From Dimorphilus gyrociliatus (taxonomy: Eukaryota > Animalia > Annelida), in assembly GCA_904063045.1 (NCBI GenBank), contig CAJFCJ010000006.1, forward strand, positions 2,408,946 to 2,472,945: a stretch of 64,000 nt of DNA, written 5' to 3'. A program made the position numbers and the translations under genes. Under the pieces are notes generated by a model. That model was not told the DNA's origin, made no database searches, and was given only the letters and a program-made list of their open reading frames with translations. Numbering within the stretch: the first letter of the stretch is position 1; the number at the start of each line of letters is the position of its first letter. This document shows, piece by piece, positions 4,449-49,218 of the stretch.

Positions 4449-4771
4449 ATGTTTATAGCGAATAAAATTCAAGTTTTTGAAGGGTGACCTACATCTAGTG
4501 TTTATCAATTTCGCGAAATAACTATTTCGGTGATAGGTTCAAACCACAAACATTCTTTAAACCATAATGTATTCGTCTCGATCTAATGCAACGCCTTACA
4601 CCAAACATAAAATCATTGACTAAGTAACTGAAGGAAAGTAAAACGTTCGACTAGTGCATTGAGATATAATTATAAACAAATGACAATAGAAATATAAGTA
4701 TATGCAATATTTATACTTATACATTTTTATATAAATGCGTGAAAAGGGGCAAAAAGCTCGATTTGTATAAA

Positions 4772-15993: not shown

Positions 15994-16630
15994 ATGGCTT
16001 CTAATAACGAACTTGCGTGTGTATATGCCTCTTTAATCTTGGCTGATGATGGTGTTACTATCACGGTATATTCACGTGTTAAGCTACCTGACAAAATTGT
16101 TTAATTATTTCATTTTTCTTCAGGCTGATAAGATCCAGGCTGTTTTGAAAGCCGCTGGTGTCTCTGTCGAACCCATTTGGATCAACTTGTTTGCTAAAGC
16201 TCTAGGAGATTTGGACATCAAAGAATTAGTAGCTAAAGTTGGAAGTTCAGCCGGTTCTGCCCCTGCTGCTGCTGCCCCAGCTGCTGCTAGTGGTGCTGAC
16301 GCTGGAGCTGCCGGTAAGAAAACACTTTAAAAACCTTGCTTTATTCACATTTTATGTTTTCTATAGAATCCAAAAAGGAAGAGAAAAAGGAAGAGTCCGA
16401 AAGTGAAGATGATGATATGGGATTCGGTAAGCATTGGTTTTAGTAATAATCTGAAGTATATTCTAAACCTTATTTAAATCATGATGATCGCATAGTTCAG
16501 CTGATACACCATGCAGAATCATTGCATATGTCTTTCGCTCCTAGCTGATATCGTCTTAGATTTATTTAAGAATGTTTGCTCTTTACCCATAACTAACTCA
16601 CTTTTTCTCTGTACAGGTTTATTCGAATAG
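15994..16630 (+). CDS. RPLP1: 60S acidic ribosomal protein P1 (4 coding exons)
   Basis: [39 protein letters not shown], an Ala-rich hinge, and [18 protein letters not shown]-stop. Confidence 0.96.
16481..16548 (+). ncRNA. Intronic box C/D snoRNA candidate with two 28S rRNA guides
   Basis: Lies in the unusually long last RPLP1 intron. Box C ATGATGA 16481-87, D' CTGA 16501-04, C'-like ATGCAGA 16511-17, D CTGA 16545-48. Guide GCATAGTTCA is complementary to conserved LSU UGAACUAUGC, and guide GTCTTTCGCTCCTA to UAGGGGCGAAAGAC (14 bp, one G-U). rRNA sequences were recalled from memory. Confidence 0.85.
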
Positions 16631-41436: not shown

Positions 41437-42903
41437 GCTTAGTTCAATAATTTTCATTTAGAATGAAAAGAGCTGTCTGGAAGGATAGGGGAGGAAGGTA
41501 GACAGGGGTTAAAAGACGAGGGCAAGACGATAGAGAGGGCCAGTGAGTCGCTTTATATATTCAGCTCGTTTTTTTTTGATTAAGGCCGGGGTTTCTTATA
41601 TAAAAACAAATTTCGGTATGCCAAGCACGTGCGGTATGCAGGACGTAGAAAGATTATTTGTGTGCTATTGCGAACACCGAATAAGTACGAAAATGAACTT
41701 ATGTAAACTATTTTTTATTTGTTAGTAGTTCTAAACTAAAAATATAAAAAAGAGAATTCCCTCGAAAGGAAATTTCCTACTAATTCCAATAAATAAACAA
41801 ATTAAACAGACAAACAACAAACTAAAGAGAATTAAAGGAGTTAAGCTATCTTTTCATTTTATTATCATTTATACAATTTCTTTGTTACGTTTCCTTTTTT
41901 ATCTTAAAAAAATGTGTAAATCATTTAACAAAAACTTGGCGGTAGGTAGAATGCATAGATACTTTTTTATTTTACTACTCTTTAATATCCCCATATATTC
42001 TTGCCTTTTCTTTCATAGACAATTTCATGTTACACATTTAAAAGAGATGTACTTTTAACTAATAATATATATCTCCATATTAATATATATATATATTGTA
42101 CGCGTATTTATTTAAACTAAGAAAAGTAAGAGTAAAAGCGGTTAGCTTGTTAAACATTTTAAGTTTATTGAAATTGAAGTTAAGATATTAAACAGGAAAT
42201 TTACTTTTAGTATTCAGTTTATATCCATATCTCTATACCGGTCGACCCTTTGAACCGGGCAAAAATATTTGAACAATACCCTCGGAATACTTTGTTATAC
42301 TATCCGATATTAGCACCCATAGATCTCTTTGTTTTGGAGCTTCCTTTTTTTTTCTCTTTACACCTAAGATTCCCTAGATAACCTTAAAGCTTTAAGGCAT
42401 TTTAGTATATTAACCAAATAGAACGTATGATTGATAAAACACTTGAATTTTTTATTAAATTATGTATTTTTATTGTTTTTGATTTCTAAATTTTTATTAC
42501 AGATAGGGTTTCCATTTAAAATTTAACAATTTCTTTCGCACTTTAATATGAAATTGCTATCTACTTAATGACTAGATATTAGTATATTAATTATTAATAT
42601 TTAGATAAATGCATTTATGTAAACAATGTAAGTATATATAAAATTTATATAAAAATACGATAAAAATCAAGAAAATTTGAAAATGAAAACGAATACAGGC
42701 TACTACTAAGATTATAGTTAAACAATAATTAAAATTTATAATAAATGAAAAAAAAAAAACAATTAAAAATTCAACACCATAAATCAGTTATTTTAAAATT
42801 CTTAGACCATGGCAAAAACAGACAAAATACTAATAAAACAGACAAAATATTTCTTTTTAAAACATATATTTAAGTAATGTAAAATGTATACTCTTATTGC
42901 TTT

Positions 42904-45201
42904 CTAATCACCTAAACTTAATTGTATTTTATCCTCGAAGAGAGCTATCAAAAGCATAATTCCAGCACCTGTTGTGATCCCCCCAATATGAAGTATCAAA
43001 GCAAACATAGTTGGATGACTGGTTTTACCACTATTTAAGTGAGGCATCATATCTGCTAAGGCAATATATATAAACATGCCGGCCGCTAAACTAAAAATCC
43101 ATGAAGATGCGGTATCGACATTTCCCAGACCGACTCCTATAACCATTCCCATTAGGCACAAAATGGAAGACAAGATATTATATAACAATGCTCTCTTTAC
43201 AGTCATACCGGCTTTTAATAAAACAGCAAAATCACCAAGTTCATGAGGTAATTCATGACAAAGTACAGCTACTGCTGTACTAACTCCACCCCCTATACCA
43301 GCAGCAAAGGCTGCTCCTATGGCAAGCCCATCCGAAAAGTTATGTAAGCCATCTCCGAATATTACCATCCAGGCAACGGCTCCCATACTATCAGGGACAT
43401 CATGACTATGACCATGACCTTTGCTTGAAGTATCTTTTTCATAACTATATGGAGTGGCAGCTGATGCTCCAGGGCTAAGATCATCCATTTCATTAACATC
43501 ATGGTCGCATTCTACGTCGACATCTGTACTTTCATCTCTTAATTTCTTTGACAGTTCTTCATCAGTCAAAATATAAGAATATCTTGAGTGATGTGTGCAC
43601 AATCTCCTAGCGACACGTGGTGAGTCGATAGTCAACATTTTTGCCTTTCTTGACCGCCTTTTCCTTTGATATCTATTCAGTATGGACAAAAGACGTTCAG
43701 CAATGAAAAACGTGTATAAACCGGCTAAGGCTACAAGTCCCTTGAAAACTCCCGACTTGTCGGCATGGGAATGATCGTCACCCTCTGCGTGACCTCCTGA
43801 AAGTGCATGAGGTATCAAGTGCAACAGAGCATCACCCGTTAAAGAACCAATTGCCAAAGCGACTAGAAAAGATAATAGATGATCATAGATTCTACTTTTC
43901 ATGAGAGGCACAGCTGCAACCCCTAACAAACCCACCATACTGATAACAAATACGCTAAGAAGAGCACAACCCCATACTTTTAAAGGTATTCTTGAAAAGT
44001 CGAATGCCTTCTTGCTAATGATAACTACATTTTGAGCTTCCTGATAACGTCGTTGCTGTTCAATACAGGCATGATCGTCAATTTGAGCAACAAGAACTGG
44101 GCAAACTTTTAAAAATTCGCTTTTGTTTATCGTCTTTTTCCTATTTTTCACCAAAAGTAATAACTCATCTGGTCGAAGGCACTGTTAGAAAAAATTAAAT
44201 AATTAGTATAACATATTTGAATATATAATAATTTATATTAACAGCTGTTTTATTAAAAATGCTGCAATATAAAAAAATCGATCCAACTTATCTACATTTT
44301 GTAAAAATAGAATTAAATATTCCCACAGCTGATTATTACTGATTCTATTGAAGAACGTATAAAAAGAATAAGTTTAGGACCCTTAATCTTATTGAGGACA
44401 AATACTAAAATAATCCCTCCAACTCATTTTTGTTATAATCATTTAAATTATACTCTATTTGTTTTTTTATGAAAATACAATATCTTTTTGGTTCAGTAAA
44501 GTTTGCAGTTGAAAACTAAAATATTATCTCATCCATCTTATTTAAATATTCCATAATATTTACTAAAACTCTTTCCATAATACAGTATATCACGTTACTA
44601 AAGTACACAATTTTTTATGTTAAAAACCACCCTTCATCTCATCGCCTAAATAAAAAAATCATTTTTTATTTACTTTGTTCGATTGTATTGTCCTTTTTTG
44701 CCTGTTGGACAGTATTTCTTCATCTTTTATATCATTTTCTTCTTGTGGACTTGTTCCTTCTTTGCTCTTATTGTTTTGACTATCAGTTTTAGAATTTTCA
44801 AGTTTCTTTTTACCATGAACATGAGAATGGCTTGAACTCGTCTTTCTCTTATTACCTTCAAGTTCGTTCGTCGCTATGTTGTCATGTTCATTATCAAGAT
44901 GGTGATCGTGATCATGCTCATGATCGTGCCCATTCTTGTCTTTAAGTGTTGGATTACCACTATAGGAATGCTCGTGAGAAGGATGAAATTCGTGAAAGCC
45001 TCCAGCTTTTTTATGATCAACTAAATCATGCTCAAGAGTAACGTTACCCAAACCCAATGCTTGTAATAAGTGTTCGAAACCTTCGAAAGGCATATTGGTT
45101 CCATTGCCGTACTTTTCAAAAATATGACGAAGGAAATACTCTTGATTGAATGCAGCAGAACATGCGACGATTAGTAAGGAGAAGATAATTAACCTACTCA
45201 T
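42904..45201 (-). CDS. SLC39A10: LIV-1 subfamily ZIP zinc importer (ZIP10/ZIP6/foi-like), paralog A; exons 45201-44674, 44181-42904
   Basis: Signal peptide, His-rich ectodomain, CPVLVAQID, LAIGSLTGDALLHLIPH, GDGLHNFSDG and HELPHELGD (HEXPHEXGD). ZIP10 versus ZIP6 orthology is not resolvable here. Confidence 0.88.
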
Positions 45202-45320
45202 TGTAAACTGAAAAGGGAAAAATAAATATATTTATTAGATTATTATGTATGGTAAAATACATATATTTAATAAATTATCTCTTTTTACACAGAGCCTAAA
45301 CATATTTTATCAAATAGATA

Positions 45321-45381
45321 GTTGGTTGCACACCATCTTTAATACTTAAGTAGATAAGATATTGTGGAGGTGTGCATCAAC
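45321..45381. promoter_or_regulatory. Inverted pair of metal-response elements in the 5'UTR intron of ZIP paralog A
   Basis: TGCACAC at 45327-45333 and GTGTGCA at 45370-45376 sit inside the imperfect inverted repeat gttggttgcacacc / ggtgtgcatcaac. Confidence 0.5.
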
Positions 45382-48207
45382 AGTCATAGTTCATACTATA
45401 CGCGGATCTTGTCTACAAAGTTCGTAAAGAAATGAAATATAAACCCAGTCAGGGGCCGATCAGTAAGCTACAAAATATATTGAACCTTTGACCCTATTCT
45501 ATTGACTCATTCCAGATCGATAGTGGTTTGGAAATCGAATGTTTATGTTGTGACAAGAACACCACACAAAGTTGCAATGAAATTTTATATTTAAACAACC
45601 CTAACAGACGTAGTTGTTATGCTTTAACAAGGATTTTTCATTTAAATTGTATTTCATTCCATATAACATCTTTTCATGCTTTATTAGACAAATAAGGGTA
45701 ATTTAATATCATCGCATTTTATCGCCCATTAAATAACTTAACGATGACGATGAAACCTGCTCTGATTGAAGGACTTTCTATCAATCGCACAATTCGTTTA
45801 GATATAATCTCGTACTTAGTATAAAGTAAAAAAAAAGGAAATACAACATGAAAATCTTTAGAAACATTCACCCATCTTTCGTATCAATAAATTGATTTTT
45901 AATCAAATTAATTAGCTAAGCAATTGATACAAACAACTTATTTCCTCAATTTGATTAATATCTCTTTATTTGAAAGTAACTTTTTTTTTCTGTCATTTAA
46001 CTTATCATTAAATATATAAAAAGGAAATTTATAAGTAAACAATTGAAAAAAAAAGTGTTTTTGACAATAGCTACTTGTTGAATATTATCAACTGTACACA
46101 GTACACGTTAACATGCTTATTTTGGGGTAAACATAACCTATAAATAAAATTGTACAATCAACCAATGATTTTAATACCGGTTTACGATTAAATCATAAGT
46201 ATCAATAGTAAAAGGCATTCTGAGACAAAATAGTTTTCTCTATGAATAATATAATGACATAAAAGTTAAAGCTTTGTAATTAACTGTTTCAAAGTGACCT
46301 AATTTATTTGGATATAAGTCAAAATTAAACCTATAGTTATTACATTTACATAAATACATGCATCATCAAAAGATTAACTCTAGAATAAAGTCGATTTTAT
46401 CATACTAAGAACTATTCCAAGAGAAATGTAAATTAGATATTAATTTCTACTTACAATTTTTTTAATTTACTGTTGGTGACTGGAACTTTTTTTGTCTGAG
46501 GTTAGAAAGGTTATGATTTATACTACTAAACGCTGCATATCAACAATAAAACATATTGAACAGAAGTAGTATTGCTATCATTTTAAATGCTAAAAGAAAG
46601 TTCCTGAGTATAACCACTCAAAGTTCTCAATGCCGTCTTCAATCTCGAATAATTTTATTATATTAGTATTAATGATTACTTTTAAATATATTAATAAATT
46701 ATAATACATATTCTCCTCTCAAAGGCTTTAAATAATAACAATGTATAAATATTCGGTTTATTTCAAATGATAACATTGATAAAAATTGCTTTTTTATCCA
46801 AAGTATTCTCTTCCTATCTATAATTAGCCTATATATTTCAGAAAATTATATTATAATTGTTAATTGTAATACCTATTATAAATGAAAAATTAGACAACCC
46901 TTGTTATCTGATCAACTGATTTAGGCTTGAAATGAAAAGTTAGAGGGAAAAATAGAAAACACACCTTGTTAGAGGAAAGTGATCATTTAACAATTGTGTA
47001 AGATCCTATAACAAGCAATATCTAATTGCAATAAATGGAATTTAAAAATTGATAATTTCACATACCTTTAATACTTGAATAAAGTTAAAGACTGTTGGAC
47101 TTAAACTTCTCTAAAGGTATTCTTTCCAAATTGTAGCGAGATAGTCTGGTAAAATGGAAGGAAAAAGGAAAAGTGTTACATTTAAAGAGTTCAACTTTTA
47201 ACTGTTCAGCGCCACCTGCATACTTCCTAACTGTCAATTATCCAATACAAAATAGTTTTTAGATAAATACTTTCCTTAATTATCAATAGAATCTAAGTAG
47301 AAATTTTCTTAAAACTATTCAATTATATTAAACGTAATATCCAAAAAGAACAAAAAGAACAGAACATTCTAAAGAATACTTCATTCGATTAATTTTTTTT
47401 TGGACATTATTAATGTAATTGTCTAATCGTCTGTTTGTTATAAAAGCAACTTTTTTTGATTAACTAATACTAAAAACGTAAATATTGAAAATATTTATAT
47501 TTTCTTGTTGCCTGTCGTATATTGATGCCTATGTTATTACTAAATACAAAATTTACGCAGTTATGCACAAAATAACAAACAAATAGGAGAGATTGACGTA
47601 ATTTCAGGAGGTTTTTACTCTTTCAAAGACAATAGTATTTGAAAAATAAATATGGGAATGTCATTTAATTTTAATACGAACAACAAAGTTGTACTCTCTA
47701 ACACGCCCCTCCCACATATTCTAACCAAGTGCGAAACCACAAATTATAAAGTAAGACATTGTTCTAAGTCCATAGTTGTTTAAATTGTTGCTAGTTATAA
47801 GAGTAACATATTTATAGACATATGCTATTATATATATTTAAAAAAAAGATGATTAAAAGAGAATAGTGTGATAAATAATTAGAAAGTGTTGTTCTAAGTT
47901 TCTGGTATTCGCATAACGGATTTTTAAGATTAAATTCGAGGTTTAATACTATTCTTACAACATTATTTTAACAGTTTAATTCATAGAAATAAACTATAGA
48001 ATTATTAATATTTTTTAGGACTTAAAATAAATAAGAGGTATATACTTTGAAAACTTTTTAACTATTACATTAAATAAGGCAGTTTTACTAAGATAACAAT
48101 ATAATATAGGCCTATAACATATAGCCAACATTATATTCACTGCACTGCTAATTATAGATTATGCGAAAAATAAGATATTAATTTTTGATCAAGTTATGAT
48201 CTCTTAC

Positions 48208-48355
48208 CTTTTAGTTTGTCTCCAATTAAAAAGTTTTTTGGTTCCAGTAGTAATGCTAGGCCTATACTATTGTAAAAATATGAGAAACTGTAGAGCTGTG
48301 TGCAGTGGAAGAGACGTGCGCAGTATGACTCGAAAATGACCTACTTGCATAAATA
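48208..48355 (-). promoter_or_regulatory. Predicted core promoter and first non-coding exon of ZIP paralog A with two MREs downstream of the start site
   Basis: On the minus strand: TATTTAT (48355-48349), Inr-like TCATAC with A at 48326 (29 nt downstream), MRE TGCGCAC 48322-48316, MRE TGCACAC 48304-48298, donor AAG/GTAAGA at 48208/48207. An acceptor ttcag lies just before the ATG at 45201. Confidence 0.65.
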
Positions 48356-49218
48356 CTGGACTCTCAAGAGACCTCAGTCATTTTTTTTCATTTTTATACT
48401 TCTTTTACTTTTTTGATATTTGCTCAATAAAAAAGAATTGATAAATTTTTTTTATATTCTTGTTAATTGCCGATAAGAAAATTGGAATTTTTCTCGATAT
48501 AAATAGCGATTAGTTTAAACCGGATATAGAATTCGTAATCTTTGTGCGTCATCTTAGACAATCGTATTTTTGCAAAAATACCATTAAACTTTCTTTTCGG
48601 TCGAAAAATATCAACGGAAAAATGTTTCAATAATTATTTTTGAATATCTAATTTTTAATCTTCAAAAATGAGATTTATTGAAAAAATATTGTGAAAATCA
48701 TAAGAAAAAACAGGGTGCAAAAAAAAAAACGGGTCACGTGACCTTTCCCAACACCATAAAATCAACTTTAGACTGCTTTCGGTGGTCAAAGAATACATCT
48801 GCGAAAGTTATATTTTCTTATTTATTTTAATATATAAATAATACATTTTTTGCAATATGGCACTCTCAACGTGTCAAAAATATTACTCTAAATGAAACTG
48901 AAGCCAAAAATACAAATTTACCTATAATAGCAAAATTATAAATGAGAATGTTTCACACTCCAACAAATAGAACATAAATAACAATTGATTGGAGAGTATC
49001 AATTTCAACCATCAAAAAACATAAAGATAACTACTGATAGAACAATTTAACTTATCAAAAGAGGTATAAATGTTTTCAAATTGTTCTTATCGAAGAATGA
49101 TTTTTTTTCGCATTGTAGATTAATACATTTCACTACAACGTTAAAAAAGGATTTTGCATTTTTTTTCTTTAACCTTGCACCATGTAAGATTATACTGCGT
49201 TTATAATAAAAACACAGA

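Follow-up and report, generated by a model that had tools for sequence, protein, structure and literature searches.

Results

The ZIP locus of Dimorphilus gyrociliatus

The window, by which we mean the whole 64,000-nucleotide stretch of DNA analyzed here, is part of contig CAJFCJ010000006.1 of the annelid Dimorphilus gyrociliatus (record coordinate = window coordinate + 2,408,945). It contains two Zip genes that share a strand, ZIP-A (paralog A) and paralog B, and no gene is annotated between them on the contig. The coding parts that matter for what follows are these.

42904 to 44181, minus strand: ZIP-A coding exon 2, with the Zip domain and HELPHELGD; 100% identical to P0001
44674 to 45207, minus strand: ZIP-A coding exon 1, with the ATG at 45201, the signal peptide and the His-rich N-terminus; fits the 601-aa model
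52544 to 49219, minus strand: CDS of paralog B, the second Zip gene

ZIP-A is DgyrCDS4776 (P0001, 601 aa; exon 2 match 100%), and a model running from the ATG at 45201 to 44674 and then from 44181 to 42904 gives all 601 residues. The original prediction described its product as a ZIP10-like zinc importer, and this is borne out by a Pfam Zip match (1.7e-68, beside a weak EF-hand_Zip match) and by the nearest named proteins in blastp, which are ZIP6-like, ZIP10-like, and foi. The translation also contains HELPHELGD, a His-rich N-terminus, and a hydrophobic N-terminal leader (signal peptide), as expected of the LIV-1 group. ZIP-A is a ZIP6/10/foi-type LIV-1 transporter. A look-up with the full-length protein matched the genome contig only and no transcript.

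Just beyond paralog B, a conserved block on the minus strand (48835-48863) adjoins, on its upstream side, an AATAAA at ~48826. The two together probably mark the 3′ end of paralog B, in which case a distal ZIP-A promoter region would start within ~100 nt of its neighbor's end. Separately, the coding intron of ZIP-A holds a block of ~180 nt (44230-44418, minus strand) that is 80-90% identical in the related-species contigs L002 and L003 described below, against a background of ~50%; it is overlapped by a contig of the X2 run (44283-44657) and has no Rfam match. Far from the ZIP genes, at 16473-16556 on the plus strand, Rfam identifies a C/D-box snoRNA of the snR60/Z15 family (RF00309, 49.7 bits, above the gathering score).

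Motifs between the paralogs

Between paralog B and ZIP-A, the minus strand carries a series of promoter-like motifs, listed here in the direction of transcription, with positions relative to a putative start site (+1) at 48326.

48732 to 48743, minus strand: perfect 12-nt E-box palindrome GGTCACGTGACC of the USF/CLEAR type, at ~-410; GAAAGGTCACGTGA is the same in L002
48713 to 48719, minus strand: third MRE core, TGCACCC, at ~-390; TTTTTGCACCCTG is kept in L002, with the core at 4471
48512 to 48555, minus strand: conserved upstream block, ~-190 to -230; 77% identity against 51% background
48361 to 48380, minus strand: conserved promoter element TGACTGA..TCTCTTGAGAG, -54 to -35; all but 2-3 bases are the same in L002
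48349 to 48355, minus strand: TATA-like box TATTTAT, -29 to -23; TATTTATGCAA is the same in L002
48323 to 48328, minus strand: initiator-like TCATAC, with the putative +1 at A 48326 in a pyrimidine-purine CA; AGTCATAC is the same in L002
48316 to 48322, minus strand: MRE core 1, TGCGCAC, +5 to +11; the same in L002 at 4872
48298 to 48304, minus strand: MRE core 2, TGCACAC, +23 to +29; the same in L002 at 4890

The first T of TATTTAT lies 29 nt from the initiator A. Further downstream, a splice donor, AAG/GTAAGA, would end an exon at 48208 on the minus strand (AAAAGGTAAGA at the donor is kept in L002), and an acceptor, cag/TTTACAATG, stands at 45208/45207, six nucleotides ahead of the ZIP ATG. 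The positions and spacings that had been given for TATTTAT, TCATAC, both MRE cores, the donor, and the acceptor were all correct. MRE cores 1 and 2 each sit within an 18-nt unit, the two units being direct and having 13 of 18 bases in common, and the flanks of each core agree with the extended consensus TGCRCNCGGCCC at only 10 of 12 positions. The third core lies 13 nt from the E-box palindrome, and the T-run that lies beside the core within this interval differs in length in L002. All three cores in 48298-48719 are kept in L002.

We also considered an MRE pair at 45327/45370, 120-170 bp 5′ of the ATG, as an analogue of the zebrafish intronic cluster, and dropped it because it is not kept in L002. 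No MRE was found near the 5′ end of paralog B in either species; the proposal that paralog A would be the zinc-regulated copy rests only on this difference.

How much of this could arise by chance? The window contains 17 TGCRCNC cores where 12.8-12.95 are expected, and so has no overall excess, and a same-strand pair no more than 25 bp apart occurs in 1.4% of dinucleotide-preserving shuffles of the window. Combinations of a TATA-like box with an initiator occur once per 1.27 kb of strand, nine of them in the region between paralogs B and A, and are so common that they are no evidence by themselves. AGGTRAG donors are rare, with 12 in the window on both strands together. The block has no second copy elsewhere in the window and is thus single-copy, not a repeat. 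Exact-pattern metagenome scans for the 47133-47110 exon and for the MRE pair gave no matches. Before comparison with another species, then, the case from sequence was weak to moderate.

Conservation in a related species

Using the fast-evolving first coding exon of ZIP-A as query, we found a related protein, P0121, with 44% identity, which is encoded on Logan genomic contigs of other samples, L002 (9.9 kb) and L003 (7.1 kb). Over the interval that runs from paralog B through ZIP-A, both contigs are collinear with the window. Exon 2 of ZIP-A is 79.5% identical to that of the related species in amino acids and 75.6% in nucleotides, and a global alignment of 8.7 kb to L002 has 51% identity per column, a level at which neutral DNA is scrambled. 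Against this background, identity to L002 varies along the locus as follows.

Within 48358-48199: the top 60-nt window of the 8.7-kb locus, 97%
Paralog B: the top coding-exon window, 88%
ZIP-A ATG exon: 59%
-55 to -1 of the putative start site: 73%
+1 to +68 of the putative start site: 97% (66/68)
80 nt directly past the donor at 48208: 53%

Identity from +1 to +68 exceeds that of every coding exon in the alignment. The block contains no conserved open reading frame on either strand, and both of the substitutions between +1 and +68 would alter the encoded residue in the sole open frame. L002 retains the entire set, from the element at -54 and the TATA-like box through the initiator and the two MREs, at unchanged 18-nt spacing, to the donor; the flanks are scrambled. 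No other part of the locus is as well conserved as the sequence running from the TATA-like box up to the donor, which has exon-like edges. This strongly supports the original prediction of a promoter and first exon at 48326, and we regard the start site and the leader exon, as predicted from sequence, as probably real. Because the whole block is conserved, its conservation gives the MREs no special weight.

Predicted leader exons, splicing, and RNA evidence

Conservation resumes 96 nt beyond the donor, over a second short segment. This segment, the other predicted leader features, and those with RNA support are listed below.

48208 to 48326, minus strand: predicted leader exon E1, 119 nt, no ATG, 90% identical to L002
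48112 to 48207, minus strand: predicted intron, 96 nt, poorly conserved between conserved blocks; GTAAGA donor, TTATAG acceptor (TTTTAG in L002)
48069 to 48111, minus strand: predicted mini-exon E1b, 43 nt, no ATG, 82-85% identity; donor AAT/GTAATAGT (AAG/GTAATAGT in L002)
47208 to 47219, minus strand: CTCF-core-like motif GCAGGTGGCGCT, ~60 nt 5′ of the RNA-supported exon; AGGTGGCGCT is the same in L002, in poorly conserved surroundings
47066 to 47145, minus strand: RNA-supported 5′UTR exon, seen at least from 47141; 51% identical to L002
45208 to 47065, minus strand: 5′UTR intron, 1858 nt, GT..AG; junction present in an X1 RNA contig

In E1b, conservation begins exactly at the acceptor (TTATAG/G; TTTTAG/G in L002) and ends 8 nt past the donor. 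Conservation edges that fall on splice sites are a signature of exons, and a conserved E1b suggests that the 48208 donor pairs with the acceptor 96 nt away.

RNA contigs over 42900-48800 came from two sources: X1, a coral metatranscriptome that contains a strain 95-99% identical to ours, and X2, a run of unstated type. An X1 contig splices 45207 to 47066 on the minus strand, skipping 1858 bases with GT..AG ends, and stops at 47141. The earlier proposal of a 3-kb splice from 48208 to the ATG exon is therefore supported for its acceptor (45208/45207), which is used in RNA, but not for its donor, as the partner seen is 47066. Neither X1 nor X2 has contigs over 48208-48326; X1 spans only ~55% of the known mRNA, so that its missing cover of E1 is weak evidence. 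An X2 contig lacks 45463-45515, a gap of 53 nt with GTAAGC...TTCCAG ends on the plus strand, and X2 is thus very probably RNA as well.

Two further observations come from these contigs. The X1 strain has an in-frame 6-nt insertion at 43411 in ZIP-A exon 2 (CCATGG on the plus strand) and scattered substitutions, which points to a separate D. gyrociliatus lineage in the coral samples. The gap in the X2 contig also indicates an unannotated spliced plus-strand transcript at 45354-45945 (intron 45463-45515), antisense within the 5′UTR intron of ZIP-A and with no notable open reading frame; L002 and L003 show 73-83% conservation over 45712-45471.

E1, E1b, and the 47145-47066 exon contain no ATG, at a background of 0.0177 per nucleotide on the surrounding strand (P ~0.12 for E1 by itself; P ~0.014 for the three exons together, 242 nt). 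Leader exons free of ATG are more in keeping with the 5′UTR of an mRNA that is translated than with a non-coding RNA.

Two possibilities exist for the upper end of the 47145-47066 exon: an acceptor (cag at 47146) and a proximal start near 47155. The candidate acceptor reads AAG in L002, and this, the contig end at 47141, and the conserved CTCF-like motif together suggest that the exon may be the first exon of a separate proximal promoter. Two models remain: a single promoter at 48326 followed by three leader exons, or two promoters, a distal one of the TATA/MRE kind and a proximal one near 47150, each of which would lead into the ATG exon. Trans-splicing at cag 47146 was dropped because the D. 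gyrociliatus genome paper (PMC7854359) makes a case against it. The same paper also argues against operons, gives a median intron of 66 bp, describes promoters mapped by CAGE as narrow and of TATA type with pyrimidine-purine initiators, and places CTCF motifs mostly in promoters (PMC7854359). It also used a public D. gyrociliatus RNA-seq set from 2016-17, and CAGE, ATAC-seq, and RNA-seq data for the species are public (PRJEB37657).

MRE cores in other invertebrate ZIP6/10 transcripts

In an exploratory survey, we examined eight independent invertebrate ZIP6/10-like transcript contigs, taking nearest named relatives from blastp. Their 5′UTRs contain 5 MRE cores in 2162 nt, versus 8 in the remaining 22296 nt (binomial P = 0.004, n = 8 transcripts), and base composition predicts 1.28 cores in the 5′UTRs where 5 are observed (Poisson P = 0.01). 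Three taxa bear cores, two of them with a core no more than 40 nt from the assembled 5′ end. In one of these two, L007, positions 1-23 are an Illumina adapter of 23 nt, and the core TGCGCACGGG follows after eight bases (+8 to +14). The gastropod-like transcript L016 has a perfect TGCACACGGCCC, and the second 18-nt unit of D. gyrociliatus, CTGCACACAGCTC, is closely like CTGCACACGGCTC at nucleotide 33 of the chelicerate-like ZIP transcript L012. The claim that the switch would be conserved or convergent, checked on these invertebrate 5′ ends, is favored by the enrichment and limited by the small number of transcripts and by contig ends that are assembly ends, not mapped starts; the enrichment is a lead, not proof.

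Discussion

The block around the MRE pair is almost certainly a functional element. A leader that is 97% conserved, unstructured, and free of ATG is under unusual constraint for non-coding sequence in a compact genome, regardless of what binds it. Our confidence falls with each further step of the interpretation. We lean toward the view that the block belongs to ZIP-A. That a metal-sensing factor would bind it is a tentative proposal that falls somewhat short of an even chance, and that roadblock repression would operate there, a proposal made by analogy with mouse Zip10, is rather unlikely.

Several other explanations of the block can be considered. First, E1 and E1b could open a different transcript that is spliced but non-coding, or an isoform that does not extend to ZIP-A, and the TGCRCAC units could be bound by another factor or be ordinary activating elements. 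This is unlikely but is the alternative that we take most seriously. The sole junction into the ATG exon seen in RNA comes from 47066, E1 is covered by neither X1 nor X2, and the intergenic region already yields a spliced transcript that is not annotated (45354-45945, plus strand). Further, because the MREs are part of longer 18-nt units, the recognized motif may exceed the MRE, and in the earthworm MREs have been reported without an MTF-1 orthologue (PMC4427108). Yet the lack of ATG in E1 and E1b is unexpected for a non-coding RNA, the orientation of the block and its place between the 3′ end of paralog B and ZIP-A suit a ZIP-A promoter, and MRE cores recur in ZIP6/10 5′UTRs of other phyla.

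Second, the block could be an untranscribed enhancer or insulator lying ~1.15 kb 5′ of the real ZIP-A start near 47150, with MREs that act from a 5′ position, like those of metallothionein genes; its resemblances to a TATA box, initiator, and donor would then be coincidence. In favor of this, the X1 contig ends at 47141, a conserved CTCF-like motif (47219-47208) stands near there along with a TATA-like/initiator-like pair at 47186/47155, and such pairs are common in this AT-rich DNA. But in an enhancer there would be no reason for conservation to halt only a few bases from the GTAAGA donor and to resume exactly over a mini-exon running from acceptor to donor, nor does an enhancer account for the transcribed side being more conserved (97%) than the upstream side (73%). 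We consider this explanation improbable.

Third, the block could be a gene for a small non-coding RNA, transcribed from a promoter of the snRNA type. The PSE-like element would then be at -55 and the TATA box at -30, a layout that the conserved elements at -54 to -35 and -29 resemble; a T-run at +47 to +51 could mark its end, and the transcribed part is indeed more conserved than the promoter. However, Rfam gives no credible match even at E = 10, folding of the predicted RNA is no more stable than that of shuffled sequence (z = +0.96), compensatory changes are absent, and conservation runs beyond the T-run to the splice donor, making such a gene very unlikely. More broadly, the notion of the block as any known or structured RNA was dropped when Rfam at two thresholds, the single-sequence fold, and the alignment fold all proved negative. 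Finally, a chance pair of MREs in intergenic DNA, which the lack of overall TGCRCNC enrichment in the window might suggest, is hardly credible given the rarity of such pairs in shuffled sequence (1.4%) and the persistence of both cores at the same spacing, along with 170 nt of surrounding sequence, in a species that has diverged to ~50% identity in neutral DNA.

Our preferred explanation places the MRE pair in a distal promoter of the TATA type and its untranslated leader exon, both conserved, which lie on the minus strand and point toward ZIP-A; the promoter region would begin directly past the 3′ end of paralog B. The likeliest transcript would start at ~48326, run through the 119-nt E1, lose the 96-nt intron, and continue into the 43-nt E1b, which would then be spliced into ZIP-A mRNA either via the 47145-47066 exon or straight to 45207. 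Sense-strand MRE-type sites at +5 and +23, together with the one at -390 beside the E-box, would be bound by a zinc-sensing zinc-finger factor of the MTF-1 type. At high zinc, the bound factor would impede promoter escape, in the manner of the +17 site of mouse Zip10, and this isoform would go down. The start site, the joining of E1 to ZIP-A, the identity of the factor, and the sign of its effect are inferred here. Taken as a whole, an MRE-bearing promoter and leader of ZIP-A under MTF-1-type repression is an explanation that we put forward provisionally, as one with slightly less than half the weight of belief behind it.

The closest precedent is mouse Zip10 (Slc39a10), where an MRE lies 17 bp 3′ of the only start site, within a first exon that is not translated, and MTF-1, bound to that MRE under zinc, stops Pol II elongation (PMC3124522); the original prediction had described this vertebrate case correctly. 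As in mouse Zip10, the gene here is of the ZIP6/10 class, and TGCRCNC stands downstream of the putative start in a predicted untranslated leader exon. Different from the mouse gene, there are two cores (at +5 and +23), arranged as 18-nt direct units, and a third at -390. Moreover, the start is mapped and the zinc response known in mouse Zip10, whereas the start and the connection of the leader to the mRNA are predicted here from the DNA. A vertebrate-style zinc-off switch at ZIP-A is, by this analogy, a plausible candidate. Zebrafish zip10 (Zheng et al. 2008), as summarized in PMC3944790 and PMC3124522, has two promoters with MRE clusters and opposite zinc responses. The resemblance to that summarized arrangement is that ZIP-A possibly has two promoters or leader exons (48326 and ~47150) for one ATG exon, with MREs 3′ of the distal one; the difference is that the second promoter here is only possible, as the 47145-47066 exon may be internal. 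To our knowledge, vertebrates (mouse and zebrafish) are the only organisms in which an activator bound just 3′ of the start has been shown to repress a zinc importer.

Other zinc-control systems share some of these features. Metallothionein and ZnT1 genes have upstream MREs through which MTF-1 activates them, often together with a USF-type E-box. Similarly, an MRE core stands beside the perfect GGTCACGTGACC palindrome at ~-400 of ZIP-A, and this arrangement is kept between species. Unlike those genes, ZIP-A encodes an importer, and two of its three cores are 3′ of the putative start; in an importer, activation by zinc would run counter to homeostasis. In the yeast gene ZRT2, as cited in PMC3124522, a Zap1 site 3′ of the TATA box represses a zinc importer. 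The parallel, within what that citation conveys, is a metal-sensing activator turned into a repressor by the position of its site, but the factor and motif are unrelated and the kingdom is different. The LZA enhancer of zipt genes in Caenorhabditis elegans, a 19-bp motif with a central ATGA, activates from upstream in low zinc (PMC5714235). It is likewise a conserved cis-element governing ZIP importers by zinc supply in a protostome, and it differs from the proposed switch in those respects.

Does an annelid possess the factor that this switch would need? Published reports are divided, the earthworm study having described no MTF-1 orthologue (PMC4427108). Sipunculans fall within the annelids by phylogenomics. 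From one of them, Phascolosoma esculenta, a six-finger MTF1 has been cloned whose finger domain is ~84% similar to those of vertebrates (PMC11242308). The supplements of the D. gyrociliatus genome paper contain no mention of MTF-1.

In general, MRE-type sites within the first few dozen nucleotides of the leader exon of ZIP6/10 importers could constitute an ancient bilaterian zinc-off switch that acts via an MTF-1-type factor, a broader idea that we regard as speculative and, on balance, improbable at present. If it is true, the switch has been kept in annelids (doubled here), in at least some molluscs and chelicerates, and in vertebrates, and would date back to early bilaterians. It would also imply, against the earthworm reports, that annelids have a functioning MTF-1/MRE system, and so would reopen that question.
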